Source: Okamejei kenojei (lineage: Eukaryota). From it: a DNA stretch of 63,963 bases. Of this stretch, positions 1-62,976 are shown in pieces (the stretch's first letter is position 1; the number at the start of each line of letters is the position of its first letter). The notes beneath the pieces were generated by a model. That model saw only the letters and a list, made by a program, of their open reading frames with translations. It was not told the origin of the DNA and did not search any database. Position numbers and translations under genes: made by a program. The stretch covers positions 5,208,038 to 5,272,000 of the forward strand of contig CM069172.1 of the NCBI GenBank assembly GCA_035221665.1. The letters are read 5' to 3'.

Positions 1-1195
1 AAACCGCACCAACAAACACCTCCATCCATAACAACAACTGCCCACAACCTTTCTCTAAGCACTACCTCCACCGCCCACACACCTCAGCCCCACAAATGCC
101 TCCCACCACAATGCCCACCCCACCCACACACCCATCTCCCCACAAGCCCACACACCACTCCCCTTCCCCCACATAACCCCCCCACCTCTCCCCACAAGCC
201 ACACAACCCCCCTCCCCCCCACAACCCCCCCTCCTCCCACAACCCCCCCCCTCCCCTCCCCCCCCCCTTCTCCCTCCCCCTTTCTCCCCCACCCACATGC
301 CCCCCACACAAAACCCCCCCTCCCCTTCCCCTCTCCCAACACACCCCCCCCCTCCCCCCCCTCCCCCCCCTTCCTCCCCTCTCTCTCCTCCCCCCCACAA
401 CCCCCCCCCCTTTCTTCCCCCCCCCCCACAACCCCCCCCTCTCCCCAACACAACACCACCACAACCACCCCCACAAACCCCTTTTTTTCCTTTTTTTTTT
501 TTCCCTTTTTTTTTTTTTTTTTTTTTTCTCTTTTCTTTTCTCTCTTTTTTTTTTTTTCTTTTTTTTTTTTTTCCCCCCCCCCTATCCCCACCATAAAGCC
601 GAGCCCCCCCCCACCACATATAACCCCCCCCCCCCATACCCCCCAAAACCAACCAAAAACACAAACTCCCCACCCAAACCACCCCCACCCAATCCCCACC
701 CCCACCCCCACCACAAACCCCTTCCTCCATAACACCACTTACCATGCCCACACTCTCCTCCTCCTCATACCCCCACCCGCCCACCCCCACCACCCACACA
801 CAACCCCCCCCCACCACCCCCACCACCCACCACCACACCACACCACACCCACACCCCACACACAACCCTCCCTCCACACTTCCTCTGCCCCCACCAAAAC
901 CACACCACACACCAACCCACCAAAAACACCCCCCCCCCCCCCCCCAAAACACCCCCCCCCTCCCCCCTCCCCTCCCACAACCCACCTGCCACCACCCCCC
1001 ACATCTTCCCTCCCCCCCCCACAACCACCCCCCCCCCCCCCCCAATATACACACAAATCCCTCCTCCCCCCACTCACAAACCCTCTCCAGCACACATGCA
1101 CAACTTCTCTCCCACCCACATACTCCCCCCCCCCCCCCCCCCACCAACAGACCCCCTCGTGCTGACTGAGGACACAATGGGTCCCACTAGTCTAG
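1..1195 (+). mobile_element. 3' part of a non-autonomous Helitron with C-rich minisatellite (left-arm copy, low-quality sequence)
   Basis: Mirror of 58768-59570; degenerate hairpin then CTAG at 1192-1195 followed by T. Confidence 0.65.
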
Positions 1196-2645
1196 TTACT
1201 TTCTGAAAAGGTCAATGTACACTACATCCACTGGCCTCTCCTCTCCATTGTCCCTTTTTCCCCTCCGTAAGTCATATGCTGACTTCGGACCCGATCCTGT
1301 TATTGTATTTCCAAACATGCCGCTATTTCATCTTTTACTAATTGACTACGTATCCTTCTTCACCATCAATGTCATATTTACTGGTCTATAATCCCAGATT
1401 TCTCTCTCTTCACCTTCTTAAATGTGGGACGAACATTAGCTATCCAAACCCAGGACGTGATCCGAATCTAAGAAACATTGAATAAATGATCACAATGCGT
1501 CCGATTCTCGAGGCCACTTCTTATGTACCCTGGGATGCTGGTCATCATGGCCCTGAGGGGATTCATCAGCCTTCAGTCCCTCGTCTACCAAACACTTTTC
1601 TGCAGTTCTTTCATCAACAAACATAGAAAAATAGGTGCAGGAGAGGCCATTCGACCCCTCGAGGCCTGACACCGCCATTCAATTGATCATGGCTGCTGAA
1701 TCCAACTAAGTAGCCTTGTACTGCTTCTCTCCACACCCCCCCTGGATCCTTTAGCCACAAGGGCCACTTCTAACTCCCTCTTAAATATAGCCAATGGAAC
1801 TGGCTCAACATATATTCTGTGGCAGAGAATTCCCAGATTCACCACTCTCTCATTGAAAAAGAGACCCTAGATTCTTTGGCACTAGTACATCAGGAGATTG
1901 TTTGTGTCTTCCTTGTGAAGATGGATCGGATGCTTCAACAGGGTTTTAGATGGAGTATTTAAGATAGTGGAGACTAGGGATATGGGGTGAGGAAGGCAGG
2001 AACTTGTGGATGATCAGCCATCAAATTGAAAGGCGGGTTGCTGGCTCGAAGGGACAAATTGCTTGTCTGCTCTATTGTCTATTGTATATTGTCAAAGTAA
2101 CTGTTCAACTCGTCTTGCCATTTTCCTTATACCCCATTAATAAATTCTCCCTGTGGTAATCTTCAGATTCCAAACTTCGGTTTTTAACTAATTTTGCTCT
2201 TTCACATACCTAAAGAGCGTTTTTATTATCCTCCTTTATATTCTTGGCTACCTTACCTTCGTACCTCATCTTTTCTCAACGCATTACCTTTTAGTTATCT
2301 TTTTTTGCTCTTAAGTACCATCATTGGTTACCCGTCATTTTGCTGTGTTATACTTCTTCTCTTTTATTTTTATGCTCCCCTGACTTGCCTTGTCAGCCCG
2401 GTCACCCCTTACTTCCCTTGGAATCTTTCTTTCTCCTTTGGAATGAACTTCTGATTCTGCCACCTTCTGATTATTCCCAGATGAAATACACGACATTGTT
2501 GTTCACTGTCATCCCTGCCAGGGAAATCTTTCCAATCAACTTTGGCAGCTTCTCCTCATGGCTTCCATAGTCCCTTTGTTCCAAACCGTTTTAATACTGA
2601 CATTCTGATTTGCCCTTCTGCTCACTCACATTGTAGATTGAAACA
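1196..2645 (-). mobile_element. Decayed CR1/HER1 LINE fragments (mirror of ~57100-58767)
   Basis: Reverse complement of right-arm CR1 ORF2 remnants. Confidence 0.7.
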
Positions 2646-2666
2646 TAGTCACTACCTCCAAATGCT

Positions 2667-2845
2667 TGTGGTTCTTAACCTGGCAGTTTGTGAACCACAA
2701 TGGGGGTCATTTGGGGCATTGCGGGGGTCATGAGTGGAACTATAATAACACATCAATTTGTTGAGCCAATGTTTAGGGACTATTAAAAGTAACATACCAT
2801 ATACAGTAATTTTGTACAGGTGCCAAAAACGTTTAAGAACCACTG
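2667..2845. mobile_element. hAT-type MITE, left-arm copy
   Basis: gtggttcttaacc ... taagaaccactg termini; mirror of 56899-57076. Confidence 0.65.
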
Positions 2846-3509
2846 TCTATGGCTCTTTGCTTGAGGTTCCCTTTATTGAATCCGGTTCATACACACGCTA
2901 AGGGTGGTTTGTGTTATGAGGAATGTTGCCAGCACTCGAGAATTAGACAGGTACACAATGGGTTCAGATTTTGGAGGGGTATGGGCCAAAATGCAGGCAG
3001 GTGGGACTGGTTGTAGGTGCTACATGTTGGCTGCTGTGGGAGTTGGGTCGACGTCTTTATAGGAGTCATTTATGTTTAGGCCAGCTTCACTGTTGGCATA
3101 TTTATATTATTTTGTTTAGATTTTTCTAGCGGATATTATATTGGACAGTTGATGGCGGGTTCATTTGATGCTGGAAGAGTGTAAACACATGAGGCTCCTT
3201 AGGGACAGGGAGTGATTCAGACCTGCTAAGGAGGTGGAGGGTACACGTGCCACAGAATCAGGAGAGAAACAGGAAGTTACAACTTGTATGAGAATAAAGA
3301 GTAACTGGTACGTCCATATCTTTGTTTGTACAACTACTTCAATATAGAATGACTGGAAGATCTGTTTCTTTGTTGTCTGTGTAAGATCACCCTACTTTAG
3401 TGTGCAGGTAATGGCTAACGGAAGTTGGCCAATTGTAAAAGTAGAATGGGCATTACAGTTATGACCGTTCTGGGCTCTCTGACTTGCCCTCACCAGAGAT
3501 GTACCTCAC

Positions 3510-3812
3510 CTGTTCCATCGACCAGATACACGTGAGGGGCATGGCTTCCCGTGCCGGTTTCGGAGCTGAGCATATGGCCGTACATACTCCCATCCCTCAC
3601 CCACTTCAGAGTGAGGGAGCCATACAAACCAGATGCCCGGCTCTTGCCACCTGCCAGATGTGAGCGTCCGTGGGTTTGATTTCGCTGAGGTTGGCGAGGG
3701 GGAGGCACCACGGTTGAGCTCTCCGGGTGGGTTGCACACTGGCCGCACACACACAGGTGACACTCTCAGGTGTAGTGTGTGCATCCCGGAATCCAGGAAA
3801 TCTCTGGCACAT
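3510..3812 (-). CDS. Siglec/MAG-like gene (left copy): MAG-D5-like exon, many indels, acceptor also GG
   Basis: Aligns to 55945-56238; peptide pieces appear in ORFs 3490-3750 and 3606-3887; acceptor reads ctctgg|atgtgcc. Confidence 0.6.
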
Positions 3813-4289
3813 CCAGAGGGTTGGAACAAGACACGAAGAGTTGTGAATGTGCAATTCTCTGCCACAGGAGGCGGCTGTGGAGTCCAATTCACTGGATTTT
3901 TTTCAGAGAGTTAGATTTAGCACTTGGGGCAAAGGAATCAAGGGATATTGGTTCTGGGGGGTTTCTGTATTTTAGTAGAATCAGCCAAGATCAATCTTTG
4001 AATGGTGGTGCTGGCTCGAAGGAAGAATGGCCTAATCCTGCTGCACAAATTTTTCTAAGTTTCAATGAGATCAAACTCAAAATGCTGGAAAAACTCAGTG
4101 GGACAGGCAGCATCTCTGGAGAGAAGGATCTGCCTCCGTCACTGCCCTTGGGCAGCGTGTTACAGATGCTCCCCATGGTCTGTTGTTTTTAAACAGTTTT
4201 ACCAGGGAGTACAATTATCCTATCAACCAAATATCATTAGTCTGAAGAAGGGTCTTGCTGCCCTGTCCCGCTGAGGTACTCCAGCATTG

Positions 4290-4510
4290 CCAATAACCAA
4301 CCTGAATCTCCCCCAGTGGCTCAGCACTTTAACTCGTCCTCACATTCCGAATCCGACCTTTCTGTCCTGAGCCTCCTCCATGGCCAAGTGAGGCCCACCA
4401 AAAAAATTGGAGGAGCAGCACCTCATATTTTTGGGCCTTGCATTTACACCCCCATCAGTATGAACATTGACTTCTCTAATTCTCAGGTAGTCCCGGCTTT
4501 CTCCTCCCCT
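4290..4510 (+). mobile_element. Penelope-like element fragment (C-terminus of GIY-YIG endonuclease)
   Basis: Translation PVAQHFNSSSHSESDLSVL...MNIDFSN is typical of the PLE ORF end; mirror at 55295-55475. Confidence 0.7.
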
Positions 4511-5271
4511 TCCCAGACACATTGGTCAACTTGATGAACACCTTCAGCAACAGACTGGTTCCACCAAGATGCGGAGGACCGAACGCCACAGGAGATCCTT
4601 CTTCCCTGTGCCTGTCAAACTGTACAACTCCTCCCACTCCTGTTGTAGTGTTTGACTGAGACTGACTCGCCTCCCCACCAGCCCCTCCCTCCCACGTAAA
4701 CTTTGCACAGCCCCCAAGCCCTTTCCACTCGTCACTTTAATTTCATGTTTAAGTATTTTGTTTTTTGGGTATTTTGTGTTTTTAGTACTCTCCTGGATAT
4801 ATAAAGTTCTATCATCTCGTATCGTATTGTAAAATTTGCCGCCGTACGTCTCCTTTACGATTTTCCCCTCTCACCCTTAAAGCTCTGCCCTCTCAACCTT
4901 GACATTTGCACCATGTGAAAAGATTCTGACTGTCTACCTTCCTCATGCAACTCCATAGTTTTTTATGTATTTCTGTCAGGTCCTCCCCTCAGCCTTTGAA
5001 CTGGGTGGTGAATCTGTGGAATTCTTTGCCACAGACAGCAGTGCAGGCCAGTCAGTGGATATATTTAAGGCGGGGAGATAGATAGATTCTTGATTAGTAC
5101 GGGTGTCAGAGGTTATGGGGGAGAAGGCAGGGGAATGGGGCAGGGGAGGGAGAAATAGGTCATCCATGATCGAAATGGCAGAGTAGACTTGATGGGCCGA
5201 ATGGGGCCTTATTGTGCTCCCATCACTTATGAACATGAACTCCAGAGAAAGTCTATCCAACCTCTTCTTTA

Positions 5272-5580
5272 ATTTAGTTTAGAGATACAGCACGGAAACA
5301 GGCCCTTCGGGCCCACTGTGTCCACGCCGACCAGCGATCCCCCACACACTTATACTATCCTGCACACACTAAGGACAATTTACACATATACCAAGCCAAT
5401 TAACCTGCACACCTGTATATCTTTGCAGTGTGGGAGGAAACCGGAGCAACCCAAAGAAAACCCACGTAGGTCATGGGTGAACCTGCAAACTCCGTACCGA
5501 CAAGCACCCGTAGTGAGGATTGAACCGGCTCTCTGGTGCTGTGAGGCAGCAACTCTACCGTTGAACCACTGTGCCCCCTG
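5272..5580 (-). mobile_element. HE1/V-SINE-type tRNA-derived SINE
   Basis: tRNA-like head, V-domain (gctccggtttcctcccacac) and CR1-derived tail (gggcctgtttccgtgctgtatctctaaactaa). Confidence 0.8.
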
Positions 5581-6674
5581 TGGTGGGATGCTTTAAAAAC
5601 TCCTTATTGGTAATACTCTCTAATCTGGCAGCGTTCTGCACCCTGACCACATCTATCTTCCTGTAATGTGGTGACCAGAACTGCACGCAAATGCTTCAAA
5701 TAATTTTATCTAATCTTCCTCATCTTAGTAGAGGAGAGAGGAAATATAGGAAAGATGTTGTCAAGCAGGAAAGGGTGCAGAGAAGATTATGAGGATAAGG
5801 CCAGAACTAGAGGGGCCTGAGCTATAGGAAAGCTTGAGCAGGCTGGTACTCTCTTCCTTGGAGTAAAGGACAAACCTCATCTGAAACATCACCTACCCTT
5901 GTCCAGGAGTGAAGGCCTGCGCTACAGGGAGGTTGGGGCAGGCTGGAACTCCTTGGAGGGCAGGCGGCGAAGAGGGGTGATCTTATAGAGGTGTGCAAAA
6001 TCATTGGGTGGAACTGATCAGGTAGACACACAGAGTCTCTTGCCCAGAGTAGGAATCGAGGACCATAGAACATAGATTTAAGATGAGAGGGGAGAAGATT
6101 TAAAGGAAGCTGATGGGTAGCTTTTTTTTCCACATAAAGGGTGGTGGATGTATGGAACGAGCTGCCGGATGAGGTAGTTGAGCTGGGATCATTGCAACGT
6201 TTAAAATACAGTTGGACAGGTAACATGAACATGACTGTTTGGAGGGAATATGGGCTGAAGTAGGGCAGGTGGGACTAGTGTAGATGGGACTCGTTGGCCG
6301 TGTGGGCAAGTTGGGCCAAAGGGCCTGTTTCCACGCTGTAAGACTCTATGACTCTAAAGATGCTGCCCATGACCCACTGAGTTGCTCCAGCACTTTGTGT
6401 TTCAGCAACGTGAGGAGTGATGGTAGGAGTGACGAGGGAGGCATTGAAGGTTTTCTGGGTGGAAATCCAACAATGTCAGCAGAGGTGAGACAGGCTACAT
6501 ACAGGTGGGGAACACAAAAAGACTGTAGATTGTGGGCGGCACGGTGGCGCAGTGGGTAGAGCTCCTGCCTCACAGCGCCCAGACACCCGGTTCAATCCTG
6601 ACCACCGGTGCCTTTCTGTACGGAGTTTGCATGTTCCTCCCGTGACCTGCGTGGGTTTTCTCTGAATCTTGAGG

Positions 6675-7215
6675 ATGTGTGTGTTTGAGTGAGTACGTGT
6701 GTGAGAGAGAGAAGGAGAGAGAGAGCGTGTTGTGTGTGGCGATTGTGAGAGAATGTGTCTGTGTTTGCGTGAGTGTGTGTGAGTGAGCGAGAGAGTGAGA
6801 GAGATGGTGTTCATGTGTGTGATTGAGTGAGTATGTGAGTGTGTGTGGTGGAGAGGAGACTGTGTGAGTGTGTGTGGTGAGAGAGTGTGAGTGTGTGAGT
6901 GTGAGAGAATGTGTGTGTGTGAGTGAGTGAGTCTGTCAGTGAGTGAGAGTGTGAGTGTGTGTGAGAGAGTGTGTGTCTTCTTCTTGCATATGACGTGCAC
7001 AGCCTAAATTGTCGGACAACTTGTTCTATTTAATCTTATTTGATTGTGCACGCTGGGTTGATTACATTTGTCGAAACAGGGCGGACCACGTGAAGGTTGC
7101 AATCTCCCACCCCAGAGAATGCGTGTGTGGGCGTGTGCGTGTGTGTGTGTGTGTGTGTGAGTGAGTGTGCGAGTGTGTGTGTGTGTGAGTGTGTGAGAGT
7201 GAGTGTTGTGTGTGA
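6675..7215. repeat. Degenerate (GT/GA)n microsatellite with a short embedded repeat fragment
   Basis: Directly visible; mirror (CA/CT)n at 48728-49195. Confidence 0.9.
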
Positions 7216-7291
7216 GTTGAATTCCAGCATCTCTCATCGACCAATAAACCATCTGTCTTTAACATAGACATGACAGTGTGTGTTTACGCAC

Positions 7292-7574
7292 ATTCTACAG
7301 TGAGGGTCACATCCCTCTCTGCTGTCCCATGTTCATTCTCCGCCACACACTGATAGACCCCAGCATCCTTCCCTGTCAGCTGAGGGAACTCCATCCTCAG
7401 CTCGTTGCTGGAACGTGTTGTGTTCAGCGTGACACCGAGATGTAACCCACGTCAGGTTAGACGCTGGAAACTCTGCACGGAGCAGAGGATTCGCTGCAGA
7501 GTTTCCTTCCTTTATACTGACCCAGGAATAGTTCACGTTGTTGGGGGAAGTGATTGAGAGATTCTGGGGGGCGT
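7292..7574 (-). CDS. Siglec/MAG-like gene (left copy): C2-set exon b, with apparent single-base indels (net +1)
   Basis: 283 nt versus 282 nt; aligns to 48374-48655. The indels may be read errors or true pseudogenisation. Confidence 0.75.
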
Positions 7575-8439
7575 CTGCAAACAGATAAAATTCAGCTACC
7601 AGTTTTGCAGCAGTTCCGTGATCCTTGTAAAATACTTTAGTCTTCAGACTTTAGAAATACACTGTAGAAATAGGCCCTTCAGCCCACGGAGTCCGTGCCG
7701 ACCATCGGTCATGCATTCACACACTAGTTCTATCTTTAGGTGAATGAGAGATATAGACGATGGTGTAGAGAGATATAGAACAAAGAATGAAAGATATGCA
7801 AAAAGTTAACAATGATAAAGGAAACAGGCCGTTGTTAGCTGTTTGTTGGGTGAGAACAAGAAGCTGATGTGACGGGTGGGGGAGGGATGGAGAGAGAGGG
7901 AATGCCGGGGCTAATGGAAGTTAGAGAAATCAATATACCATTGGGCTGTAAACTGCCCAAGCAAAATATGAGACGCTGATCCTCCAATTTGCATTTAACC
8001 TCACTCTGACAATGGTGGCCAGAAAGTTCAGTGTGGGAATGGGAAGGAGAATTAATGTGTTTAGCAACCGGGAGATCAGGTCGGTCCTACATCTCTCTAC
8101 ATCATCGTCTATATCTCTCGTTTCCTTTTCACGTGACTTTCAGTCTGAAGATGGCTCTCGACCCGAAACGTCACCCATTACTTCTCTCCAGAGATGCAGC
8201 CTGTCCTGCTGAGTTTCTCCAGCTTTTGGTGTTGAATTGATTAGTACGGGTGTCAGAGGATATGGGGAGAAGGCAGAAGAAAGGGGTTAGGAGAGAGAGA
8301 TTGATCAGCCATGATTGAATGGTAGAGTAGAGTTGATGGGCGAATGGCCTAATTCTGCACCTATCGTCTATGACCTTATATACCGGCACTGCTAATAGAT
8401 TATTGCTGTCCTGCCACAATAAACGATCTCCGTACTTAC

Positions 8440-8733
8440 ATTGCACAGTCAGTGTGAGGGTCTGCTCCGATGACACAGTTGGGTATCTGACTCTGCAGGT
8501 GAGCTTTTGCCCGTGATGTTTGAGCGCTGGGGTCAGGGACAGAACAGAAGTATATGTCAGAGTGTCACCCTGCTGAGTTACGCTGTTAGAGGCTGACGGT
8601 GGTTCATCAGCGGGGGTGACCCAGGTTAAGGTGGGTGCCGTTCCATTACACGTGGTGTTGAAGGAGCAGGTCATGTTCCCAGGCTTTCCTGCCACCAATT
8701 CAGCAGGGAATATCGTGGGTTTATCCGTGAAAT
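8440..8733 (-). CDS. Siglec/MAG-like gene (left copy): C2-set exon a
   Basis: 294 nt, AG/GT bounded, three internal amino-acid differences from the right copy. Confidence 0.92.
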
Positions 8734-9192
8734 CTAACACACAGAGAAACAAATACTTTTAGTTTAAATATCACTGGATACATCATTCACATCGAAATCC
8801 CAGTCCCACACGAGCAAGTATGTCGTTACAAGGTATAGAAGTGTGAAAATACACACCCTCCAGATAAAGGAACAGTTTCTTCCCAGCTGTTATCAGGCAA
8901 CTGAATCATCCTACCACAACCAGAGAGAGGTTCTGAAACTACTATCTGCCTCAGCAGAAAGACTATACATGATTGCAATCGAGTCATTTTGCAGAGTATG
9001 GACACGTGATGAGGGAATAACGTTTAGTGCAAGGTAAAGCCAGCAAAGTCCAATCAAGGATAGCCCGATTGGTCACCAGTGATGTCGACGGTCGTTCAAC
9101 ACTGCTCTCTGGTTGTGGTAGGATGGTTCAGTTGCCTGATAACAGCTGGGAGAAACTGTTGAGTGAATGAGTGAATTATACAGAGCACTTAC

Positions 9193-9561
9193 TAGTAACA
9201 CTGAGCTGTGTTACAGGGTGGTAGTTGTAACGATTTCCCCCTCCAAAATCAACTCTGAAAAAATAAGGACCTGCATCTTGCTGCGTGACGTTGTCTATAA
9301 CCAGGGAACAGTCGTTGTCTGTCAGGACTCCTGACAGCCGGGTCCGATGCTGAAACTTTGCTGATTCTAGACTGGGATTCCCGGAGTGGAAGGCGACAGA
9401 ATCTTCGTCGTACAGCTTCTCACTGTTATACCAGATTCCAGTCCGTGGTTTATTGTTTAGATTCGACGGGTACGTGTAGCGACACGGAATCCATGCACAT
9501 AAACCATTCTGCGCTGTCACAGCTTGTGGAGTGTCCGCACCCCCACTCTCCGACACCACGG
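9193..9561 (-). CDS. Siglec/MAG-like gene (left copy): V-set exon
   Basis: 369 nt, AG/GT bounded, open frame; DAGPYFFRVD keeps the essential Arg. ESG for GEW comes from two compensating G-run indels, probably sequencing error. Confidence 0.92.
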
Positions 9562-9694
9562 CTGAGGAGAGAAGGAACAATCTTTAGCAGTGAACACCCT
9601 GTCAGTTCACTGGGACTTTCCACACCTTTATCCTGCGCTGTGGACCTGGTGTGAACAGAGCGTAGAAAGAGCGGCATCGTGGTGTAGTGGTAGA

Positions 9695-10512
9695 GCCTCC
9701 CCCCCTCACCGCCCCTCCCCCAGTGATCACTCCCCCCTCACCGCCCTCCCCCAGTGATCACTCCCCCCTCACCCCGCCCCTCCCCCAGTGATCACTCCCT
9801 CCTCACCGCCCCTCCCCCAGTGATCACTCCATCCTCACCCCTCACCGCCCCTCCCCCAGTGATTCACGTCCCCCCTCACCGCCCCTCCCCCAGTGATCAC
9901 TCCTCCTCACCGCCCCCTCCCCCAGTGATCACTCCCTCCTCACCGCCCCTCCCCCAGTGATCACTCCCTCCTCACCGCCCCTCCCCCAGTGCATCACTCC
10001 CTCCTCACCGCCCCTCCCCCAGTGATCACTCCTCCTCACGCCCCTCCCCCAGTGATCACTCCCTCCCTCACCGCCCCTCCCCCAGTGATCACTCCCTCCT
10101 CACCACGCCCCTCCCCCAGTGATCACTCCCTCCTCACCGCCCCTCCCCCCCGTGATCACTCCCTCCTCACACCGCCCCTCCCCCAGTTATCACTCCCCCT
10201 CCCCGCCCCTCCCCAGTGTATCACTCCCTGCTCACCGCCCCTCCCCCAGTGATCACCCTCCCTCCTCACCGCCCCTCCCCCAGTGCATCACTCCCCCTCC
10301 CCAGTGCTCACTCCCCCCTCACCGCCCCTCCCCAGTGCATCACTCCCCTCCTCACCGCCCCTCCCCCAGTGATCACTCCCTCCTCACTGCCCCTCCCCCC
10401 AGTGATCACTAACTCCTCACCGCCCCTCCCCCATGATCACTCCCTCCTCACAGCCCCCCCCAGTGATCACTCCCTCCTCACACCGCCCCTCCCCCAGTGC
10501 ATCATCTCCCAG
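9695..10512 (-). repeat. 32-33-bp GC-skewed minisatellite (~25 units) in the leader-to-V intron of the left gene
   Basis: Unit cccctcccccagtgatcactccctcctcaccg with variants. Confidence 0.95.
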
Positions 10513-10543
10513 TAAACAATACTGAGTTTGCTGCTGATGGTAC

Positions 10544-10583
10544 CTTGGAGAAGGGAGAGGAGGAAGAACGATCTCCCGATCAT
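10544..10583 (-). CDS. Siglec/MAG-like gene (left copy): signal-peptide exon
   Basis: Identical coding sequence to 45778-45817 on the minus strand. Confidence 0.85.
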
Positions 10584-10679
10584 TGTCCGATCACAGATTT
10601 CCCATCAGTTTACCCGATCTCCCGGTCTGGAAGAGAAGAGTTATTTCAGTAAAACTCCAGCAACCAATATACATTAAGC

Positions 10680-11262
10680 AACATGGATGCAATGCTGAGG
10701 CTCTATGAGGTGCTGGTGAGAGCCACATTTGGAATATTGTGAGTAATTTTGAGACCCTGTATCTGATGAAGGATGTGCTGGCTCTGGAGAGGGTCCAGAG
10801 GAGGCTTACAAGAATGGTCCCAGGAATGAGTGTGTTTACATATGAGAGCGTTTGACTGCACTGGGCCTGTACTAGCTGGAGTTTAGAAGAATGAGGAAGG
10901 ACCGCATTGAATCTTACCGAAATAGTGATAGGCTTGGATAGAGTGGATGTGGATAAGACTTTTCCACTAGTGGGAGAGGTCATGGGCCTCAGAATTAGAT
11001 TTTCTTTTAGGAAGGAGATGAGGAGGAATACATTTAGTGAGAGGGTGGTGAATCTGTGGAATTCTTTGCCACAGAAGGCTGTGGCGGCCCAGTCAGTGGA
11101 TATTGTTAAGGCAGAGATAGATAGATTGTGAATTGTAAGGGTGTCAGGGTTATGGGGAGAAGGCAGGAGAATGGGATTAGGAGGGAGAGATGGATCAGCC
11201 ATGATTAAAAGGCGGAGTCAATTTGATGGGCTGAATGGCCTAATTCTGCTCCTATCACATGT
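10680..11262 (+). mobile_element. CR1/HER1 3' fragment
   Basis: RPHLEYC-like region and RVVNLWNSLP motif, then 3'UTR; mirror at ~45105-45685. Confidence 0.8.
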
Positions 11263-13166: not shown

Positions 13167-13322
13167 CTGGGTTCTACCCGCTGGTCGAGTATCGACTGAC
13201 AAACACTCAGGGGACCAGTGTCCTCATCCTCAGCGGCCGTCACTGTGTGGAGAACACGAATGTGTAGAGGAGTAGATTAGCATCTGGAAACGGAAGTAGA
13301 ATAAGGAAGTATTCTTTTATCA
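13167..13322 (-). promoter_or_regulatory. Putative promoter and non-coding first exon of the left Siglec-like gene
   Basis: Essentially identical reverse complement of 43450-43605, including the GATA/Ets/E-box motifs and the donor. Confidence 0.5.
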
Positions 13323-48655: not shown

Positions 48656-48727
48656 GTGAGTAGACACACACTGTCATGTCTATGTAAAGGCAGATGGTTT
48701 ATTGGTCGATGAGAGATGCTGGAATTC

Positions 48728-49004: not shown

Positions 49005-49037
<33 letters not shown>

Positions 49038-52705: not shown

Positions 52706-53112
52706 CATACTGAATGCGGGCAGGTGGGACTAGTGTATCTGGGACATGTTGGCCGGTGTGGGCAAGTTGGGCTGAAGGGCCTGTTTCCACACTATCACCC
52801 TATGACTCTAACTCTCGTCAGAGAGAGGAGAACTTTTCAAAGTAGACATATCTTGAGATTTCATAGTGGAGCAGACAAAATGTTTAGGAAGGAACTGCAG
52901 ATGCTGGTTTAAACCAACGATAGACACAAAATGCTGTAGTAACTCAGCGGGTCAGGCAGCATCTCTGGAGAGTAGGAATGGGTGACGTTTCAGGTCGAGA
53001 CCCTTCTATAGACTAGTTACATTCGTACTTCATCTTTTCTCTCCGTACTGTCCTGGTTGGCGAGTGGAATTCTGCCGTGTTAACTCGCGTTTAAACCTTT
53101 GTTTGTCTTTAG

Positions 53113-53394
53113 ATGCTCCACGTAATCTCTCAATCACTTCCCACGATGATGCGAACAGTTCCCGGGTCATTGTAAAGGAAGGAAACTTTGCAGCGATCCT
53201 CTGCTCCGTCCAGAGTTTCCCAGCAGCTAACCTGACGTGGGTACATCTCGGTGTCACGCTGAACACAACACGTTCCAGCAACGAGCTGTGGATGCAGTTC
53301 CCTCAGCTGACACGGCAAAACGCTGGGGTCTATCAGTGTGTGGCGGAGAATGAACACGGGACAGCAGAGAGGGATGTGACCCTCACTGTAGAAT
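53113..53394 (+). CDS. Siglec/MAG-like gene (right copy): duplicated C2-set exon b'
   Basis: tag| ... |gtgagt, 282 nt, open frame, close paralog of 48374-48655. Confidence 0.9.
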
Positions 53395-54220
53395 GTGAGT
53401 AGACACACACTAACACGTCCCTCAAAACGTCATAAGTGACAGGGGCAGAATTAGATTGTCGAATGGCCAAGTCTACTCCACCATTCAATCATGGCTGATC
53501 TATCTCTCTCTCCTAACCCCGTTCTCCTGCCTTCTAATAGAGCCATAGAGTTATAGAGCCATAGTCATAGTCATATAGAGGCATAGAGTGATACAGTGTG
53601 GGAACTGCTCAACTTGCTTTCAACAGCCTACATGTCCCAGCTACATTAGTCCCACCTGCCCATGTTTGGCCCATATCCCTCCAAACTTGTCCTATCCATG
53701 TACTTGTCTGTTTCTCAAACGCTGGGATAGTCCCAGCCTCAACGACCTCCTCTGCAGCTCATTCCATACAACAACTACCCTTTGTATGAAAAAGTCCCCC
53801 TCTAGATTTCTTTGAAATATTTTCCTTCACCTTGAACCTATGTTCTCTGGTCCTCGATTCACCTACTCTGGGCAAGAGACTCGGTGCGTCTACCCGATCT
53901 ATTCCTTTCATGATTTTAAACACCTCTATAAGATCACCCCTCATCCTCCTGCACTCCAAGGAAGAGAGTCCCAGCCTGCTCAACCTTTCCCTACAGCTCA
54001 GGCCCTCTAGTTCTGGCCTCATCCTCATGAATCTTCTCTGCACCCGTTCCTGCTTGACAACAGCTTTCCTATATTTCCTCTCTCCTCTACTAAGATGAGG
54101 AAGATTAGATAAAATTATTTGAAGCATTGTGTGCAGTTCTGGTCACCACATTACAGGAAGGATGTGGTCAGGGTGCAGAACGCTGCCTGGATTAGAGAGT
54201 ATTACCAATAAGGAGTTTAA

Positions 54221-54530
54221 AGGGGGGCACAGTGGTTCAACGGTAGAGTTGCTGCCTCACAGCACCAGAGAGCCGGGTTCAATCCTCACTACGGGTGCTT
54301 GTCGGTACGGAGTTTGCAGGTTCACCCCATGACCTACGTGAGTTTTCTTTGGGTGCTCCGGTTTCCTCCCACACTGCAAAGATATACAGGTGTGCAGGTT
54401 AATTGGCTTGGTATATGTGTAAATTGTCCTTAGTGTGTGCAGGATAGTATAAGTGTGTGGGGATCGCTGGTCGGCATGGACACAGTGGGCCGAAGGGCCT
54501 GTTTCCGTGCTGTATCTCTAAACTAAATTA
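54221..54530 (+). mobile_element. HE1/V-SINE-type SINE
   Basis: Mirror of 5272-5580; B-box-like GGTTCAATCC. Confidence 0.8.
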
Positions 54531-55294
54531 AAGAAGAGGTTGGATAGACTTTCTCTGGAGTTCATGTTCATAAGTGATGGGAGCACAATAAGGCCATTCG
54601 GCCCATCAAGTCTACTCTGCCATTCGATCATGGCTGATCTATTTCTCCCTCCCCTGCCCCATTCCCCTGCCTTCTCCCCATAACCTCTGACACCCGTACT
54701 AATCAAGAATCTATCTATCTCCGCCTTAAATATATCCACTGACCTGGCCTCCACTGCTGTCTGTGGCAAAGAATTCCACAGATTCACCACCCAGTTCAAA
54801 GGCTGAGGGGAGACCTGACAGAAATATATAAAACTATGAGTTGCATTGAGAAGATAGACAGTCAGAATCTTTTTCACATGGTGCAAATGTCAAGATTGAG
54901 AGGGCAGAGCTTTAAGGTGAGAGGGGAAAATCGTAAAGGAGACGTACGGGGCAACTTTTACAATACGATACGAGATGATAGAACTTTATTTATCCCAGGA
55001 GAGTACTAAAAACACAAAATACCCAAAAAACAAAATACTTAAAATATGAAATTAAAGTGACGAGTGGAAAGGCTTGGGGGCTGTGCAAAGTTTACGTGGG
55101 AGGGAGGGGGCTGGTGGGGAGGCGAGTCAGTCTCAGTCAACACTACAACAGGAGGGGGAGGAGTTGTACAGTTTGACAGGCACAGGGAAGAAGGATCTCC
55201 TGTGGCGTTCGGTCCTGCATCTTGGTGGAACCAGTCTGTTGCTGAAGGTGTTCCTCAGGTTGACCAATGTGTCTGGGAAGGGGAGGAGAAAGCC

Positions 55295-55475
55295 GGGACT
55301 ACCTGAAATTAGAGAAGTCAATGTTCATACCGCTGGGGTGCAAACTGCCCAAGCGAAATTTTTCGGTGGGCCTCACTCTGGCCATGGAGGAGGCCCAGGA
55401 CAGAAAGGTCGGATTCGGAATGTGAGGACGAGTTGAAGTGCTGAGCCAGTGGGAGATCAGGTTGGTTATTGCAAT
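55295..55475 (-). mobile_element. Penelope-like GIY-YIG C-terminal fragment
   Basis: NQPDLPLAQHFNS...LGSLHPSGMNIDFSNFR. Confidence 0.72.
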
Positions 55476-55944
55476 GCTGGAGTAACTCAGTGGGACCGGC
55501 AGCAAGACCCTTCTTCAGACTAATTATATTTGTTGATAAGATAATTGTACTCCCTGGTAAACTGTTTAACAGACCATGGAGAGCATCTGCACCACGCTGC
55601 CAAGGGGAGTGACGGAGGCAGATCCTTCTCTCCAGAGATGCTGCCTGTCCCGCTGAGTTTACTCCAGCCATGTTGCGTTTGATCTCATTGAAACTTAGAA
55701 AAATAGGTGCAGGATTAGGCCATTCTGCCCTTCAAGCCAGCACCACCATTCAATATGATCTTGGCTGATCTACTAAAATCAGTACCCCAGAGTCCTGCTT
55801 TTTCCCCATATCCCTTGATTCCTTTGGCCCTAAGTGCTAAATCTAACTCTCTTGAAAAAAATCCAGTGAATTGGACTCCACAGCCTTCTGTGGCAGAGAA
55901 TTGCACATTCACAACTCTCTCGTGTCTTGTTCCTCCCTCTCCGG

Positions 55945-56238
55945 ATGTGCCAGAGATTTCCTGGGATTCGGGATGCACTCACACACCTGAGAGTGTCACC
56001 TGTGTGTGTGCGGCCAGGTGTAACCCACCCGGAGAGCTCACCTGGTGCCTCCCCCTCACCAACCTCAGCGGAAATCAAACCCACGGACGTCTCCACATCT
56101 GGCAGGTGGCAAGCGGGCATCTGGTGTATGGCTCCCTCACTCTGAGAGTGGTTGTGGGATGGGAGGATGTGACGGCCTTATGTTCAGTCCGAAACCGGCA
56201 CGGGGAAGCCATGCTCATGGTGTATCTGTCGATGGAAG
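55945..56238 (+). CDS. Siglec/MAG-like gene (right copy): membrane-proximal Ig exon resembling MAG domain 5; non-canonical acceptor
   Basis: 294-nt phase 1-1 open frame (VPEISWDSGC...VTCVCAARCNP...GSLTLR...CSVRNRHG) with G|gtgagg donor, but the pyrimidine tract ends in cgg, not cag. Confidence 0.7.
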
Positions 56239-56898
56239 GTGAGGACATCTCTGGGTGAGGGAAGTCAGAGAGCCAGAAAGCCATACTTTAATGGCCATTT
56301 CTAACTTTTACAATGTCCAACTTTCCGTTGCCATTACTACACACGTAAGTAGGAGTGATCTTACACAGACCAACAAAGAACAGATCTTCCAGTCATTCTT
56401 TATTGAAGTAGTTGTACAAACAAAGATATGGACGTACCAGGTTCTCTTTATTCTCATACAAGTTGTAACTTCCTGTTCTCTTGACCTGTGTGATCTGTGT
56501 ACCCTCCACCTCCTGTAGCTGGTCTGAATCACTCCCTGTCCACTAAGCCCATGTGTTACACCCCTCCATGCATCAAATGACCGCCATCAACTGTCCAAAA
56601 TAATACCGCTAGAAATATCTATGCAAAATAATATAATATGCCAACAGAAGCTGGCCTAAACATAAATGACTCCTATAAATACCGTCGACCTTCGACCCAA
56701 CTTCCCCACACCAGCCAACATGTCGCACCTACACCAGTCCCACCTGCCTGCATTTGGCCCATACCCCTCCAAACCTGACCTCATTGTGTACCTGTCTAAT
56801 TCTCGAGTGCTGGCAACATTCTCATTACACAACACCCTTAGCGTTGTGTAATGAACCGGATTTCATAAGGGAACTCGAGGCAAAGGAAGCCATTAGGA

Positions 56899-57076
56899 CA
56901 GTGGTTCTTAACCTTTTTGGCACCAGTACAAAATACTGTATATGGTATGTACTTTTGATAGATCCCTAACCATTGTCTCAACAAATTGATGTGTTATTAG
57001 AGTTCCCTTCATGACCCCCGGCAAAGCCCCAAATGACCTCCATTGTGGGTCACAACCCCCAGGTTAAGAACCACTG
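56899..57076. mobile_element. hAT (Charlie-like) MITE, 178 bp
   Basis: Perfect 16-bp TIRs CAGTGGTTCTTAACCT and perfect 8-bp TSD CATTAGGA. Confidence 0.9.
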
Positions 57077-57099
57077 CATTAGGAGGTAGTGACTATGTT

Positions 57100-60000
57100 T
57101 TAATCTACAATGTGAGAGGGAGAAGGGCAAATCAGAAATGTCAGTATTACGGTTGAACAAAGGGGACTATGGAGCCATGAGGGAGGAGCTGGCCAAAGTT
57201 GATTGGAAAGATTCCCTGGCAGGGATGACAGTGGAACAACAATGTCGGGTATTTCTGGGAATAATACAGAAGGTACAGGATCAGTTTATTCCAAAGAGAA
57301 AGAAAGATTCCAAGGGGAGTAAGGGGTGACCGTGGCTGACAAGGAAAGTCAGGGGGAGCATAAAAATAAAAGAGAAGAAGTATAACACAGCAAAGATGAG
57401 CGGGAAGCCAGATGATTGGGTAACTTTTAAAGAGCAACAGAAGATAACTAAAAAGGTAATGCGTTGAGAAAAGATGAGGTACGAAGGTAAGCTAGCCAAG
57501 AATATAAAGGAGGATAGTAAAAGCTTCTTTAGGTATGTGAAGAGGAAAAAATTAGTTAAGACCGAAGTTGGAATCTTGAAGACTACAACAGGTGAATTTA
57601 TTATGGGGAACAAGGAAATGGCAGACGAGTTGAACAGGTACTTTGACAATATACAATAGACAATAGGAGCAGAGTAGGCAATTTGTCCCTTCGAGCCAGC
57701 ACCGCCATTCAATTTGATGGCTGATCATCCACATTCCTGCCTTCTCACCATATCCCTAGTCTCCGCTATCTTAAGAGCTCCATCTAACTCTCTTGAAATC
57801 ATCCGATCCATCTTCACTAAGGAAGACACAAACTATCTCCCTGATGTACTAGTGTCCAGAGAATCTAGGGTCTCTTTTCACACAGAGAGTGGTGAATCTG
57901 TGGAATTCTCTGCCACAGAAGGTAGTTGAGGCCAGTTCATTGGCTATATTTTAAGAGGGAGTTAGATGTGGCCATTGTGGCTAAAGGGATAGAAACATAG
58001 AAACATAGAAATTAGGTGCAGGAGTAGGCCATTCAGCCCTCGAGCCTGCAATTCAATATGGGCATCAGGTACAGGGCCACATCCAACTCACTCTTAAATA
58101 TAGACTGAACTGGCGTGGCAGAGAGTGAGACTCACCACTCTTGCCATCCAACGAATTTTGTAAGTTTCTATAAGATCCAATGAGCCGAGTGCCAGGACTC
58201 GAGGAATCAGCTGGTGACCTTCTCTGCACTCCCTCTATGGCCTGCCCCATTTTTTTTTGCCTATGTGCATGGACTGATGACACTGCTGCAAAATAACTCA
58301 CATTCAGGGGAAGTGGAGGAAGGCAGGTACAGGTACTGATTGGATGTAGACTGATTGACGGGCCCCCAGGGCCTGATGACCTGCATCCCAGGGTACTTAA
58401 GGAAGTGGCTCGAGAAATCGTGGACGCATTGGTGATCATTTTCCAATGTTCTATTGATTCAGGATCACGTCCTGTGGTTTGGAGGATAGCTAATGTTCTC
58501 CCACTTTTTAAGAAAGGTGAGAGAGAGAAAACTGGGAATTATAGACCAGTTAGCGTGACATAGGTGGTGTAGAAGATACTGCAGTTAATTATAAAAGATG
58601 AAATAGCGGCATATTTGGAAAACAGTAACAGGATCGGTCCGAGTCAGCATTGATTTACGGAGGGGAAATCATGCTCGACTAATCTTCTGGCATTTTTTGA
58701 GGATGTAACTCGGAAAAGGGACAATGCAGAGCCAGTGGATGTAGTGTACATGGACTTTCAGAAAGTACTAGACTAAGTGGGACCCATTGGGTCCCAGTCA
58801 GCACGAGGGGTCTGTGGTGGTGGGGGGGGGGAGTGGGGGGGTATGGTGGGAGAGGAAGTGTGCATGTGGGCTGGAGGTGTTTGTGAGTGGGGGAGGAGGG
58901 ATGTGTGTATTGGGGGGGGGGGGGGTGTGATGTGGGGGAGGGAAGATGTGGCAGGGGGGTTGTGGGATGGGGAGGGGTGTTTGTGGGCAGAGGAGTGTGG
59001 AGGAGAGGGGTGTGTGTGGACGGTGGGGGTAGTGACGAGGAGGAGGGTTGTGGGCAGTGGGTGTTATGGAGGAGGGGTTTGCGGGTGGGGAGGTGTGTGT
59101 AGGGGGTAGGGGGGTTGTGTGGGCTTATGGGGGAGAGGGGGGGTGTGGGGGAGGGGGGAGGGGGGTTGTGGGGGAGAATGGGGGGGGTGGGGGGGGGGGG
59201 TTTGTGGGGGAGGGGGTTGTGGGGAGAATGGGGGGGTGAGAATGGGGGGGTTGTGGGGGAGGGGGGGAGAGGGGGGGTTGTGGGGGAGGGTGGGTTGGGG
59301 GAGGGGGAGTGGGGTTTGTGGGGGGGGGGGGTTTGTGGGGGAGGGGGGTTGTGGGGGAGGGGGGTTTGTGGGGGGGGGGTTTTGGGGATAGGGGGGTTGT
59401 GGGGGGGTTTGTGGGGGGAGAGGGGGCTTGTGGGGGAGAGGTACGGGTGGTGTGGCATTGTGGGGAGGCATTGTGGGTGGTGGCAAATTGTGGGGGTGTG
59501 TGGGCGGGGGGGTTGTCGGGGATGAGGGGTGTGTGGTCGGGGTTATGTGTGGGCATGGGGGTGTGTGGGAGGGAGGAGGGGTATTTGGCGGGGTTGAGGG
59601 GTGGAGGGGAGGGGTGTGGGGGCAGGGCGGAGAGAGCTCGGAGAAAAGACGGGGTAAGTGCCATGGGGGAGAGTGCGGTATTACGGGGGAGGGGGGTTGG
59701 AGCCAGCGAGGGGGACTAGAGGGGAAGGTGTTGGAAATCCGATGGGGACTCACAGCGGGCGCTGGTCGCTTCACTTCCCTGGTCGTTCTCCTCCACCGGG
59801 AGTCTCCGCTTTCCGTTAGGCAACATCAGCACCATCTCCGACGCCGCGCTGGCTGGGCTGGGTCGGACTGGGCCGGGTTGGGCCATCCAGAGCCTCCCAC
59901 AGCTGCAGTAAAAACGCAGGGGGGGTGGTAAGAGAGCTTGGGGTGTGTGTGGCAGGGAGAGGATGGTGAGGGGTGTGTGGGAGGGAGGGATGTGTGTGGG

Positions 60001-62095
60001 TGGGAGGGAGGGGTGTGGGTGGGTGGGAGGAGGCGGTGGGGTGTGAGGGGGAGGGGGGTTGGCAGGGGGAGTGGAGAGAGTTCGGAAAAAAGACGGGGAT
60101 GAGCCATGGTGAAGCGTGCGGTATTACAGGTGTGGGGGGCAGGAGGCCAGCGAGGGGGACCAGAGGGGGAAGGGGTTTTGGGAGCGATGGGGACTCACAG
60201 GGGCGCTGGTCGCTTCGCTGGTTGTTCTCCTCCGCACGGCTCGTGACTCAATCAGCACGGCTTGTGGACTCATCCCCGCCTCTGGGGCTTTACTCTCCTC
60301 GTGCGCCCGGTGATTAACAGCGTTACCTTCATGGTGACTGACAGGCCCGAAGACCGATCTGCTGATCTCACGATTTTTAAAACCTTAATGCTTTTGTAAT
60401 CTACCATCGATCGGAACATAACTTGGTGCGCTTGGAACACAGGAGAACGGTGAGTAAGGTGGCGAAAAAAACCTAGTGATATAGGGTACCGTTTTTCGCA
60501 CAAATTTAAAAGAAAACGCAGACTGGAAGTAGTCAAGATGAGACTTTTAGTAATAGTGTAGATAGATAGAAGCTAGATTTTATCAGGATGCATCGCAGCT
60601 TGCTATGGGAACAGCTCCATCCAAGATCGCCACAGGTTCTTCGGCCCACCATGTCCATGCCTGCCCTTTTTTTCGGCCCATCTATTGGTATGGTTGTATA
60701 ATTGCCATGTGTACCAGAATTCAGTGTTTGCACGCAACCCAGGCAAGTCGTACTGTATAAGGCCATAAGTGATAGTAGCAGAATTAAGCCACTCGGCCCA
60801 TCAAGTCTGCTCTGCCATTCAATCATGGCCGATCTATCTCTCCTAACCCCATTCTCCTGTCTTCTCCCCATAACCTCTGACAGCAGTAATAGTATAGATA
60901 GATTTGATAAGGTCCCACATAGGAGATTAGTAGGGAAAATTAGAGCACATGGTATTGGGGGTAGGGTACTGATATGGATAGAGAATTAGTTGGCAGACAG
61001 GAAACAAAGAGTAGGGATTAAGGGGTCCCTTTCAGAACGGCAAACAGTGACTAGTGGGGTACCGCAAGGCTCGGTGCTGGGACCGCAGCTATTTACAATA
61101 TATGGCAATGATTAGATGAAAACAACATCAGCAAATTTGCAGAAGACACAAAGCCGGGTGGCAGTGTGAACTGTGAGGGGGATGCTATGAGAATGCAGGG
61201 TGACTTCGACAGGTTGGGTCAGAGGGCGGATGCATGGCAGATGCAGTTTAATGTGGATAAATGTAAGGTTATCTCTTTGGTGGCAAAAACAGGAAGGCAG
61301 ATTATTACCTGCATGATGTCAAGTTGGGAAAAGGGGCAGTACAAAGAGATCTGGGGGCTCTTGTTCATCACAAAACTGAAAGTAAGCATGCAGGTACAGC
61401 AAGCAGCGAATAAAACCAATGGCATGTTGGCCTTCATAACAAGAGGAGTTTGAGTATAGGAGCAAAGTGGCCCTTCTGCAGATGTACAGGGCCTTGTGAG
61501 ACCACACCTGAAGTATTGTGTGCAGTTTTGATCTCCAAATTTGAGGAAGTACATTTATGCGATTGAGGGAGTGCAGCGTAGGTTCACGCGGTTAATTCCC
61601 AGGATGCCGGGACTGTCATATGTTGATAGAATGAAGTGGCTGGGCGACCGAGCCACTTTGATAGAAAAGAAATGGCTCTGAGACTGGCATTCTGGCATTT
61701 AGAAGGATGAGAAGGGATCTTATTGAAACATGAAAGATTATGAAGGGGATTGACACGCTGGGGGCAGGAAAGATGTTCCCGATGTCGGGGGAGTCCAGAA
61801 CCAGGGGCCACAGTTTAGGAATAAGGGGACGGCCATTTAAAATGGAGATGAGGAAAAACATTTTTACCCAGAGAGTTGTGTGTCTGTGGAATTCTCTACC
61901 TCAGAAAGCAGTGGAGGGCAATTCTCTGGATGCTCTCAAGGGAGAGTTAGATAGAGCTCTTAAAGATCAGTGTCAAGGGATATGGTGAAAAGACAGGAAC
62001 AGGGTACTGAATGTGGATGATCAGCCATGATCACATTGAATGGCGGTGCTGGCTAGAAGGGCCGAATGGCCTACTCCTGCACCTATTGTCTATTG
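57100..62095 (+). mobile_element. Decayed CR1/HER1 LINE interrupted by other CR1 pieces and a Helitron
   Basis: ORF2 remnants; the DFQKxFDKVPH motif is split between 58767 and 60903. Confidence 0.8.
58768..60902 (-). mobile_element. Non-autonomous Helitron
   Basis: Minus strand: A|TCTATCTATACTATTACT ... hairpin TGGGACCCA-a-TGGGTCCCA ... CTAG|T, no TSD; host CR1 is restored on removal. Confidence 0.88.
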
Positions 62096-62882
62096 TCATG
62101 AATCTTCTCTGCACTCTTTCCAGCTTCCTTCCTAGAGCAGGGCGACCAAAACTGGACGCAATGCCTCAAATGCGGTCTCACCAACTAGAATCTGACATCT
62201 GCGGCAGGCAAGATATCATTGAATCATAGAGTCACATCGCATAAAAACAGGCCCATATCCCTCCAAACATCCTCTCATAGAGTTATAGTGATACATTATG
62301 GAAACGGGCTCTTCGGCCCAACTTGCCCACACCAGCCAACATGCCCCAGCTACACTAGTCCCACCTGCCTGCGCTTGGTCCATATCCCTGCAAACCAGTC
62401 CTATCCATGTACCTGTATAACTGTTTTGTAAATGTTGGGATAGTCTCTGCCTCAACAACCTCCTCTGGCAGCACATTCCATACACCCACCACCCTCTGTG
62501 TGAAAAAGTTACCCTTAGATTCCTATTAAATCTTTTCCCCCTCACCTTAAACCTGTGTCCTCTGGTGTTCGATTCCCCTACTCTGGGCAGAAACTCTGTG
62601 CATCTAACCAATCTAATCCTTCTCATGATTTTATACACTACTATAAGACAATGTTACAGTTTAGTTTATTGTCATGCGTGTTTATTGTTTTGCCTTGCAC
62701 TAATCGTTAATCACTGTAACAGTGTACACTGTGGACAGCTCGATCGACTGTAAAATCGTGTGTTGCCTTTCCGCTGGGACTGGCATACAAGCGCGCCACA
62801 AAAGCTTTCCACTGTACCTCGTTACACGTGACAATAAATTAAACTGTAAAAACTGAAAACACACCTCTGGTTGTTCTTACAG

Positions 62883-62976
62883 ATAAAAGCAGTATTTGGA
62901 TCGCAGTTTTGCTCACAGCAGGGATAATACTGATCGCTGTGCTAGCTGGATTCTTCATCTACAAGTATATACAGCG
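62883..62976 (+). CDS. Siglec/MAG-like gene (right copy): transmembrane exon, (D)KSSIWIAVLLTAGIILIAVLAGFFIYKYIQR
   Basis: ttcttacag| acceptor, phase-1 start, 23-residue uncharged hydrophobic helix followed by K..R, CG|gtaagt donor. Not in the ORF track. Confidence 0.85.

Follow-up and report, generated by a model that had tools for sequence, protein, structure and literature searches.

A probable inverted duplication placing two Siglec-type genes head to head in the skate Okamejei kenojei

The window analysed here is a stretch of 63,963 nucleotides (nt) of the skate Okamejei kenojei (assembly GCA_035221665.1, contig CM069172.1, positions 5,208,038 to 5,272,000 of the forward strand), and it carries two Siglec-type genes in the arms of a large inverted duplication. 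The left arm (969..24507, ~23.5 kb, from self-BLASTN blocks) and the right arm (37985..58977, ~21 kb, from repeat finding and self-BLASTN) are colinear reverse-complement copies, 85-97% identical in blocks. Between them lies a non-palindromic spacer of 13.5 kb (24508..37984) made of retroelements, as seen from a Pfam scan and from direct repeats. The original prediction, made from the sequence letters, had described two copies of a leader-V-C2 gene pointing away from each other in arms of over 21 kb, with the inner boundary of the right arm at 37985, and had proposed a self-comparison of the window. Self-BLASTN returned one large colinear inverted duplication, and together with repeat finding it bore out both the arm length and the boundary. 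The minus strand carries the left gene and the plus strand the right one, with both 5' ends facing the centre.

In the right gene the reading frame of every exon is open. The leader exon (45778..45817), located by tblastn with the spliced Logan protein P0001, holds the ATG, the signal peptide MIGRSFFLLSLLQ and a phase-1 donor. It is followed by the V-set (lectin) exon (46381..46746; Pfam V-set 7e-14, and Ig_CD22), which has Trp6 and the F-strand Arg101 in exon numbering, by the C2-set exon D2 (47203..47496; Pfam C2-set_2 1e-8), 91-95% identical to P0001 and to protein P0290 of Amblyraja radiata, and by the I-set type exon D3 (48374..48655; Pfam I-set 2e-11, and splice sites). The next exon, D4 (53113..53394), was delimited by self-BLASTN, exon comparison and contig borders; it arose by tandem duplication of the D3-type exon and sits in a 4-kb segment with no counterpart in the left arm (D4 versus D3: synonymous divergence, dS, 0.22; ratio of non-synonymous to synonymous divergence, omega, 0.43). 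The membrane-proximal exon D5 (55945..56238) has an open frame and a GG at its acceptor, and the transmembrane exon (62883..62976), recognised in the sequence itself, lies beyond the visible end of the arms. The right copy thus reaches a transmembrane exon, as had been predicted, after D3, D4 and a MAG-D5-like exon.

The transmembrane span contains no charged residue. Its exon is entered in phase 1 and left in phase 2, and the tail exons must therefore lie past the end of the window. Leader, V and C2 exons have canonical phase-1 splice sites in each arm, and all immunoglobulin (Ig) exons are of phase 1-1, so that skipping any single one of them preserves the frame. The transmembrane segment is 88-89% identical to those of the Amblyraja proteins P0290 and P0282, both of which have tails of the ITIM (immunoreceptor tyrosine-based inhibitory motif) type. 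By homology with these, the tail of the right gene, whose exons are outside the window, would be inhibitory.

The left gene repeats the 5' part of this arrangement. Its leader exon (10544..10583, minus strand) is identical to the right leader, the identity extending over 53 nt. The left V exon (9193..9561, minus strand) has an open frame and has kept the F-strand Arg; compared with the right V it differs at 26 residues and has one inserted codon, and its N-terminal Trp has been lost through a compensated pair of 1-nt indels. The left D2 exon (8440..8733, minus strand) is intact and differs from its counterpart by 4 nt (3 residues). Further downstream the left exons are broken as assembled: D3 (7292..7574, minus strand) is out of frame, with three private 1-nt indels that amount to a net +1 frameshift and with the B-strand Cys lost, and D5 (3510..3812, minus strand) contains ~12 small indels. 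The left gene has no D4. In both copies a minisatellite occupies intron 1, between leader and V (both found with Tandem Repeats Finder): on the left it is a G-rich array of 32-33-nt units (9700..10510, ~25 units), about twice as long as the 32-nt array on the right (45850..46243, ~12 copies). A tblastn search with 18 family proteins found no family exon beyond the modelled ones in the whole window.

At the position where D5 should be entered, AG is present in neither copy. The sequence reads CGG/AT on the right (the GG being 55943-55944) and TGG/AT on the left, and the homologues have their D5 exon border exactly there ('...VE-Y-(K/A)PEIS...'). Skipping D5 in the right copy joins D4 to the transmembrane exon in frame ('VE-Y-KSS...'). 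If the first AG past the pyrimidine tract is used, the exon begins at 55954, which creates T+AG, an immediate stop; with an upstream AG it begins at 55867, in frame and with 26 additional residues. Among the relatives, Amblyraja P0290 has an Ig exon joined directly to a near-identical transmembrane segment ('VE-Y-KSFSIW'), and the Hypanus model P0012 enters D5 at a cryptic AG inside the exon, is out of frame at its end and is anchorless. The Amblyraja models P0226 and P0247 end in '...VECE' by read-through of a D3-type donor, and P0276 ends after D5; these are anchorless as well.

Contigs aligned to 52900-58699 consisted mostly of transposable-element sequence, and the few informative pieces lie at exon borders. 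Contigs resembling complementary DNA (cDNA) start at 53113 (X17) and stop at 53394 (X15, X17) or 53396 (X16), and beyond the D4 border they continue with sequence unlike the intron. They show family D3-type exons spliced at the D4 borders, not the expression of this gene. No RNA-type contig was found on D5 within 52900-58699, where only the DNA run X1 covers that exon, and a word search with the D4 exon, limited by a length band, found no transcript fragment showing what follows D4.

Three smaller observations concern the right gene. A 58-nt tandem repeat (3.7 copies, 98% identical, 63074-63290) lies just 3' of the transmembrane exon, inside the expected next intron. An ATG-started frame within an intron (46266-46320, MPLFYALFTPGPQRRI...) matches the annotated N-terminus of Amblyraja P0002; the first exon of that model has probably been called wrongly, and a conserved alternative leader is the less likely explanation. 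In run X1, a DNA run with the same species label, all contigs differ from the window at the D4 positions 53226, 53318, 53319 and 53321; three of these four letters are of the D3 type (stretch checked: 53172-53321), and in the X1 individual D4 may be missing, may have undergone conversion or may be polymorphic.

The assignment to the Siglecs derives from searches that were run exon by exon rather than on the spliced protein. Among solved structures (PDB) the V exon matches MAG best (2.7e-18), followed by sialoadhesin, Siglec-8, CD33, Siglec-5, -10, -7 and -15, and the sole PDB match of the D5 exon is MAG D5 (9e-6). An AlphaFold2 model of the right V domain has a pLDDT (predicted local distance difference test) of 90, and the top matches of this model in Foldseek are all Siglec V domains, the first being MAG Ig1 with a template modelling score (TM) of 0.89 and a root mean square deviation of 1.8 A. 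Both copies have C-x4-C in strand B, a Cys in strand E and an aromatic-x-F-R motif in strand F (YYFR on the right, YFFR on the left), in which the Arg replaces the canonical F-strand Cys. R101 is located within model strand E96-104, and the family alignment shows almost no variation at Arg101, Cys21, Cys26 and Cys83. The translated D2 has three Cys, including the extra one expected for an inter-domain bond; the disulfide assignment in V and D2 is one that we take over from established Siglec structures. Sequence and model together make the V domains candidate sialic-acid-binding lectin domains.

A HMMER search gave 1048 matches, of which the best are all from elasmobranchs and have been named automatically by NCBI as Siglec-8, -10, -12, -13, -14 or -15, CD33-like or MAG-like. 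A word search with one member puts the family at no fewer than 159 proteins (at least) in ~20 shark and ray species, and a word search with the V exon gave 2 matches. No database protein was identical to either copy in the HMMER and word searches; the nearest are Amblyraja models, with up to 78% identity in V, 91% in D2, 84% in D5 and 89% in the transmembrane segment, a distance that suits a skate species, or loci, outside the existing annotation. The family layout is signal peptide, V, C2, a variable number of D3-type repeats (0 to 9 or more), a MAG-D5-like domain, a transmembrane segment and a tail bearing tyrosine motifs of the ITIM type. The nearest homologues that share the transmembrane type of the right gene have (V/A)VYANL and (L/V)EYAEL in their tails, and other relatives have LLYA(S/N/Q)(I/L) and TEYA(S/Q)IRFQ. 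Some predicted proteins of Hypanus and Scyliorhinus (P0003, P0004, P0008, P0156) have three or four Siglec-type V domains each, and are either true multi-V receptors or fused gene models.

In a tree of V domains both window copies group with two Amblyraja radiata proteins and a Logan transcript in a five-row clade (97/96), which is nested in a 37-row clade of elasmobranchs only (97/84). Tetrapod MAG forms a separate, strongly supported clade; in sharks, Heptranchias P0104 is a candidate MAG. On these sequence comparisons the genes are members of an elasmobranch-specific, multi-copy Siglec expansion. The original prediction is borne out here in part: the V-set Cys pattern, the F-strand Arg and the MAG-, sialoadhesin- and CD33-like V fold agree with Siglec-type genes, the last Ig exon does resemble MAG D5, the position inside an elasmobranch-only clade fits a lineage-specific origin, and the V tree, the D5 identities (34% to MAG versus 65-84% to family members) and the many paralogues per species speak against a one-to-one MAG orthologue. 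Of the phylogeny that it had proposed, the separation from tetrapod MAG stood; the placement relative to the CD33-related Siglecs, Siglec-1 and Siglec-15 did not follow from a tree built on V rows only. That the pair is "young" holds in a relative sense only, since the introns differ by 3.5-4.2% and the V domains by 21% at the protein level, and the V tree does not bring the two window copies nearer to one another than to the Amblyraja genes.

The divergence between the two copies is distributed very unevenly. Left and right differ by 9.3% in the V exon, 3.5% in intron 2, 4.2% in intron 3, 1.4% in the D2 exon and 2.1% in the D3 exon, and the V domains are 79% identical at the protein level. 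By the Nei-Gojobori method the V exons are separated by 25-30 non-synonymous and 2-3 synonymous changes (non-synonymous divergence, dN, 0.10-0.115; dS 0.027-0.039; omega ~3-4). Change at the non-synonymous sites of V has run at 2.4 times the rate of the flanking introns (p=6e-4), the synonymous divergence of V is at the intron level, and the divergence of D2 and D3 combined is below it (p=0.007). The V exon has therefore diverged faster than neutral and almost purely by non-synonymous changes, and there is constraint on D2 and D3. A third paralogue as donor in a conversion of the V exon was considered; this is unlikely because the synonymous divergence is not raised above the intron level; diversifying selection is the better reading.

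Mapped on the strands of the model, the V replacements are spread over the whole domain, with two prominent clusters. Five changes, including the inserted codon, fall in the C-C' loop (46-50), and another five in the F-G loop and at the beginning of the G strand (107-114); further changes are found in strand B and in the B-C loop. These three regions, C-C', F-G/G-strand and B/B-C, are those that we take, from established Siglec structures, to line the sugar-binding site.

The arms themselves are not uniform. The mismatch between them is 1-5% in the inner part and 9-14% in the outermost part, and identity is thus stepped; over the inner 17 kb the ratio of substitutions to indels is normal. Each arm has its own kb-scale insertions, at 14639-18925 and 20634-23704 on the left and at 38196-39679 and 49996-53946 on the right. 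The window contains no run of N. A simple fold-back read artefact was rejected because the transposable-element spacer is non-palindromic and the kb-scale insertions are arm-specific.

Directly 3' of D3, imperfect CA/TG-rich microsatellite blocks are present in both arms (48700-49300 and 6480-7280). The step in arm identity and the 4-kb insertion with D4 begin beside these blocks, which for that reason may mark a recombination breakpoint. At the outer arm ends there are low-complexity tracts, G-rich at 58700-60300 and, on the other arm, C-rich at 58-1190. The left arm probably runs on past the left end of the window through the C-rich stretch, and arm homology probably continues through both outer tracts and out of the window.

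In the spacer, the Pfam scan identified an LTR (long terminal repeat)-type pol with reverse transcriptase, RNase H and integrase (25395-29393), flanked by 207-nt direct repeats at 25063 and 29520 that were found by self-BLASTN, and a LINE (long interspersed nuclear element) with endonuclease, reverse transcriptase and GDSL esterase (~32333-35691). The Pfam scan found no host gene in the spacer, and tblastn with the 18 family proteins found no family exon there. Neither method found a neighbouring gene within the window that is useful for CD22-MAG synteny.

We favour, at a probability of roughly two in three, a genuine inverted segmental duplication with head-to-head Siglec copies whose V domains have been diverged by selection. 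In this scenario an inverted segmental duplication would have brought two copies of a single Siglec gene into head-to-head orientation, and the gap between them would since have been filled by retroelements. Selection after the duplication would have driven the two lectin domains apart, often by changes that fall in the C-C' loop or in the F-G loop and G strand, and V domains driven apart in this way would read different sialoglycans. For the right copy the predicted product is a type I membrane protein; that its tail would be inhibitory is suggested by homology only. Because the acceptor reads GG, D5 would be either skipped, with an in-frame join of D4 to the transmembrane exon, or entered through a cryptic AG; use of the nearest of these (55954) would run into the immediate stop and yield an anchorless form. 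A more far-reaching version of this reading appears doubtful to us, namely that both copies are functional and newly diverged with different ligand specificities through positive selection acting on the binding face after the inverted duplication, that the expansion is independent of the mammalian CD33-related cluster and that the loss of the D5 acceptor in this sub-lineage acts as a switch between a membrane-bound inhibitory form, with D5 skipped, and an anchorless form, in which a cryptic AG leads to a stop.

Several points weigh against the favoured reading. Contigs were aligned to 52900-58699 of the right arm (the D4-D5 region), and a misassembly at 24507 or 37985 or in the left arm may have occurred. 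Run X1 contains one D5-like contig only at a likeness of at least 90%. Between the cDNA-like contigs and D4 there are 4-10 differences; paralogues, or in the case of X17 a different species, may be the source of these contigs, and those of X15 and X16 may be DNA. In the left gene, tblastn with the 18 family proteins found no match to a transmembrane exon within the window. The excess of omega over 1 in V is marginal (p=0.036) and comes from one pairwise comparison. Finally, the V tree has 122 columns and contains no rows of mammalian CD33-related Siglecs, Siglec-1 or Siglec-15, which were outside the best 150 hits, and it gives no deep placement of this gene family against MAG, CD22 or the CD33-related Siglecs.

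The fate of the left copy can be read in two ways. It may be a true decaying pseudogene like SIGLEC16P, with its 5' exons kept alike by gene conversion and with only the right gene functional, which we regard as quite possible, if somewhat short of even odds. The net +1 frameshift and the missing B-strand Cys of the left D3, the ~12 indels of the left D5 and the absence of the N-terminal Trp from the left V all fit such decay. The stepped identity, from 1-5% mismatch in the inner to 9-14% in the outermost part, is what conversion of the 5' part would produce, and the Amblyraja model P0272 likewise has a frameshifted D3. Yet the broken exons are located in a stretch where indels outnumber substitutions. 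In the left arm at 4576-5810 there are 20 mismatches and 27 indel events, 22 of which are homopolymer-length changes of 1-2 nt, an excess of indels over the natural ratio with p~4e-17. The number of indels per 300 nt is 1-3 in the inner arm and climbs to 11-13 close to the start of the window, including places with a mismatch as low as 0.7-3%. With D4 as outgroup, the left D3 shows 1 private substitution and 5 private indel columns. On the right arm, by comparison, short-read contigs of run X1 cover the unique parts without gaps. The substitutions in D2 and D3 are moreover below the intron level, which implies that the left copy was constrained until recently. Since the broken exons lie where homopolymer indels outnumber substitutions, assembly noise is about as likely as real decay to account for the frameshifts of the left D3 and D5. 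More generally, homopolymer-type 1-nt indels are denser than substitutions over 1748-7000 and become more frequent toward the window start; this profile looks like unpolished long-read consensus, and other gene calls nearby may be affected.

The same error profile of the left outer arm is an argument for a more radical reading, that the palindrome is an assembly artefact in which divergent haplotypes, or a noisy duplicate of one locus, were joined in inverted orientation via repeats. A spacer that consists entirely of transposable elements is a typical place for a misjoin, and the single D5-like contig in X1 would also be explained. We nevertheless consider an artefact unlikely. There is no N gap, the spacer is non-palindromic, and the arms are set apart by four kb-scale insertions, one exon duplication, the length of the minisatellite and 2-5% substitutions with a normal indel ratio over the inner 17 kb. 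The V exons differ at 21% of residues and bear a signature of selection. Divergence between the arms is far above any plausible genome-wide heterozygosity.

Two further readings concern the nature of the genes and not the integrity of the locus. The head-to-head layout with near-identical leader and D2 exons recalls SIGLEC11/SIGLEC16 (PMC5701461), and could point to an activating/inhibitory pair like that one or like Siglec-5/14, in which the left copy would have a charged transmembrane segment recruiting a DAP12-like adaptor. This is improbable, because the right transmembrane segment is uncharged, the closest homologues with that transmembrane type carry ITIM-type tails, and V is the most divergent part here, whereas true pairs keep their ligand-binding domains alike; the left transmembrane segment is outside the window. 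As far as can be seen from a window that ends before the left transmembrane exon and both tails, the pair would not be an activating/inhibitory one, and the parts seen lend no support to the independent origin of a paired glycan-receptor system that the original prediction had considered. Very improbable is that the genes are the skate orthologue(s) of MAG (Siglec-4). In favour of this, no solved structure matches V better than MAG and none other than MAG matches D5, five Ig exons are present in the right copy, and NCBI calls several relatives 'MAG-like'. However, V is only 32-36% and D5 34% identical to MAG, as against the 65-84% for D5 within the family, there are many paralogues per species, and the tetrapod MAG clade is separate and strongly supported. 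In addition, D3 and D4 are a recent exon duplicate and not the D3 and D4 of MAG, and the number of D3-type repeats varies among the relatives.

The closest known system to the favoured head-to-head Siglec pair is the set of automatically annotated elasmobranch 'MAG-like / Siglec-12 / Siglec-13 / CD33-like' proteins, for example P0276, P0282, P0290 and XP_032870539.1 (P0010) of Amblyraja radiata, XP_059803329.1 (P0012) of Hypanus sabinus and XP_072122227.1 (P0016) of Mobula birostris. These share the order of domains (V, C2, n D3-type, D5, transmembrane), the exon borders and the transmembrane type with the window genes, and anchorless variants, with '...VECE' or an end after D5, exist among them; the Amblyraja relatives have 72-78% identity in V and 84-91% in D2, D5 and the transmembrane segment. 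What sets the window locus apart is the inverted pair, the absence of an AG acceptor at D5 in both copies and the extra D3-type exon on the right. The likeness to MAG (PDB 5LF5, 5LFR) consists of the best V match, a D5-like domain, the F-strand Arg and the N-terminal Trp. Unlike MAG, the window genes belong to a multigene expansion with a variable number of Ig repeats, and the transmembrane and tail type of the relatives resembles that of the CD33-related Siglecs.

With the mammalian CD33-related Siglecs the family has in common that it is fast-evolving, multi-copy and clustered with diversifying V domains, and the tails of relatives combine a membrane-proximal ITIM with a distal TxYxx(I/L)-like motif. 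There is, however, no sign of orthology, and by PDB scores V is nearer to MAG and sialoadhesin than to CD33. SIGLEC11/SIGLEC16, with which the original prediction had compared the locus, do provide a parallel in their head-to-head arrangement, in their highly similar 5' exons and in that one partner is possibly non-functional (PMC5701461). Here, though, the gene starts are 35 kb apart versus ~9 kb in primates, V is the most divergent exon instead of being homogenised, and no activating-type transmembrane segment is visible.

Fish have been described as keeping only four conserved Siglecs and as having no fast-evolving inhibitory Siglecs of the CD33-related type (PMC7226832). The fish studied in that paper are teleosts, and its text makes no mention of sharks or any other cartilaginous fish. 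A search of the literature for Siglec expansions in elasmobranchs turned up no paper, and the expansion in sharks and rays is known only as automatic database entries. Taken alone, the window is one more locus of an unstudied family and not a new principle. The locus behaves like the mammalian cluster, with local duplication, change in exon copy number, a fast lectin domain and possible soluble and membrane isoforms. If confirmed, it would make fast-evolving sialic-acid 'self' sensing testable in cartilaginous fish, and the two closely related V domains would be a natural pair in which to map the determinants of specificity.

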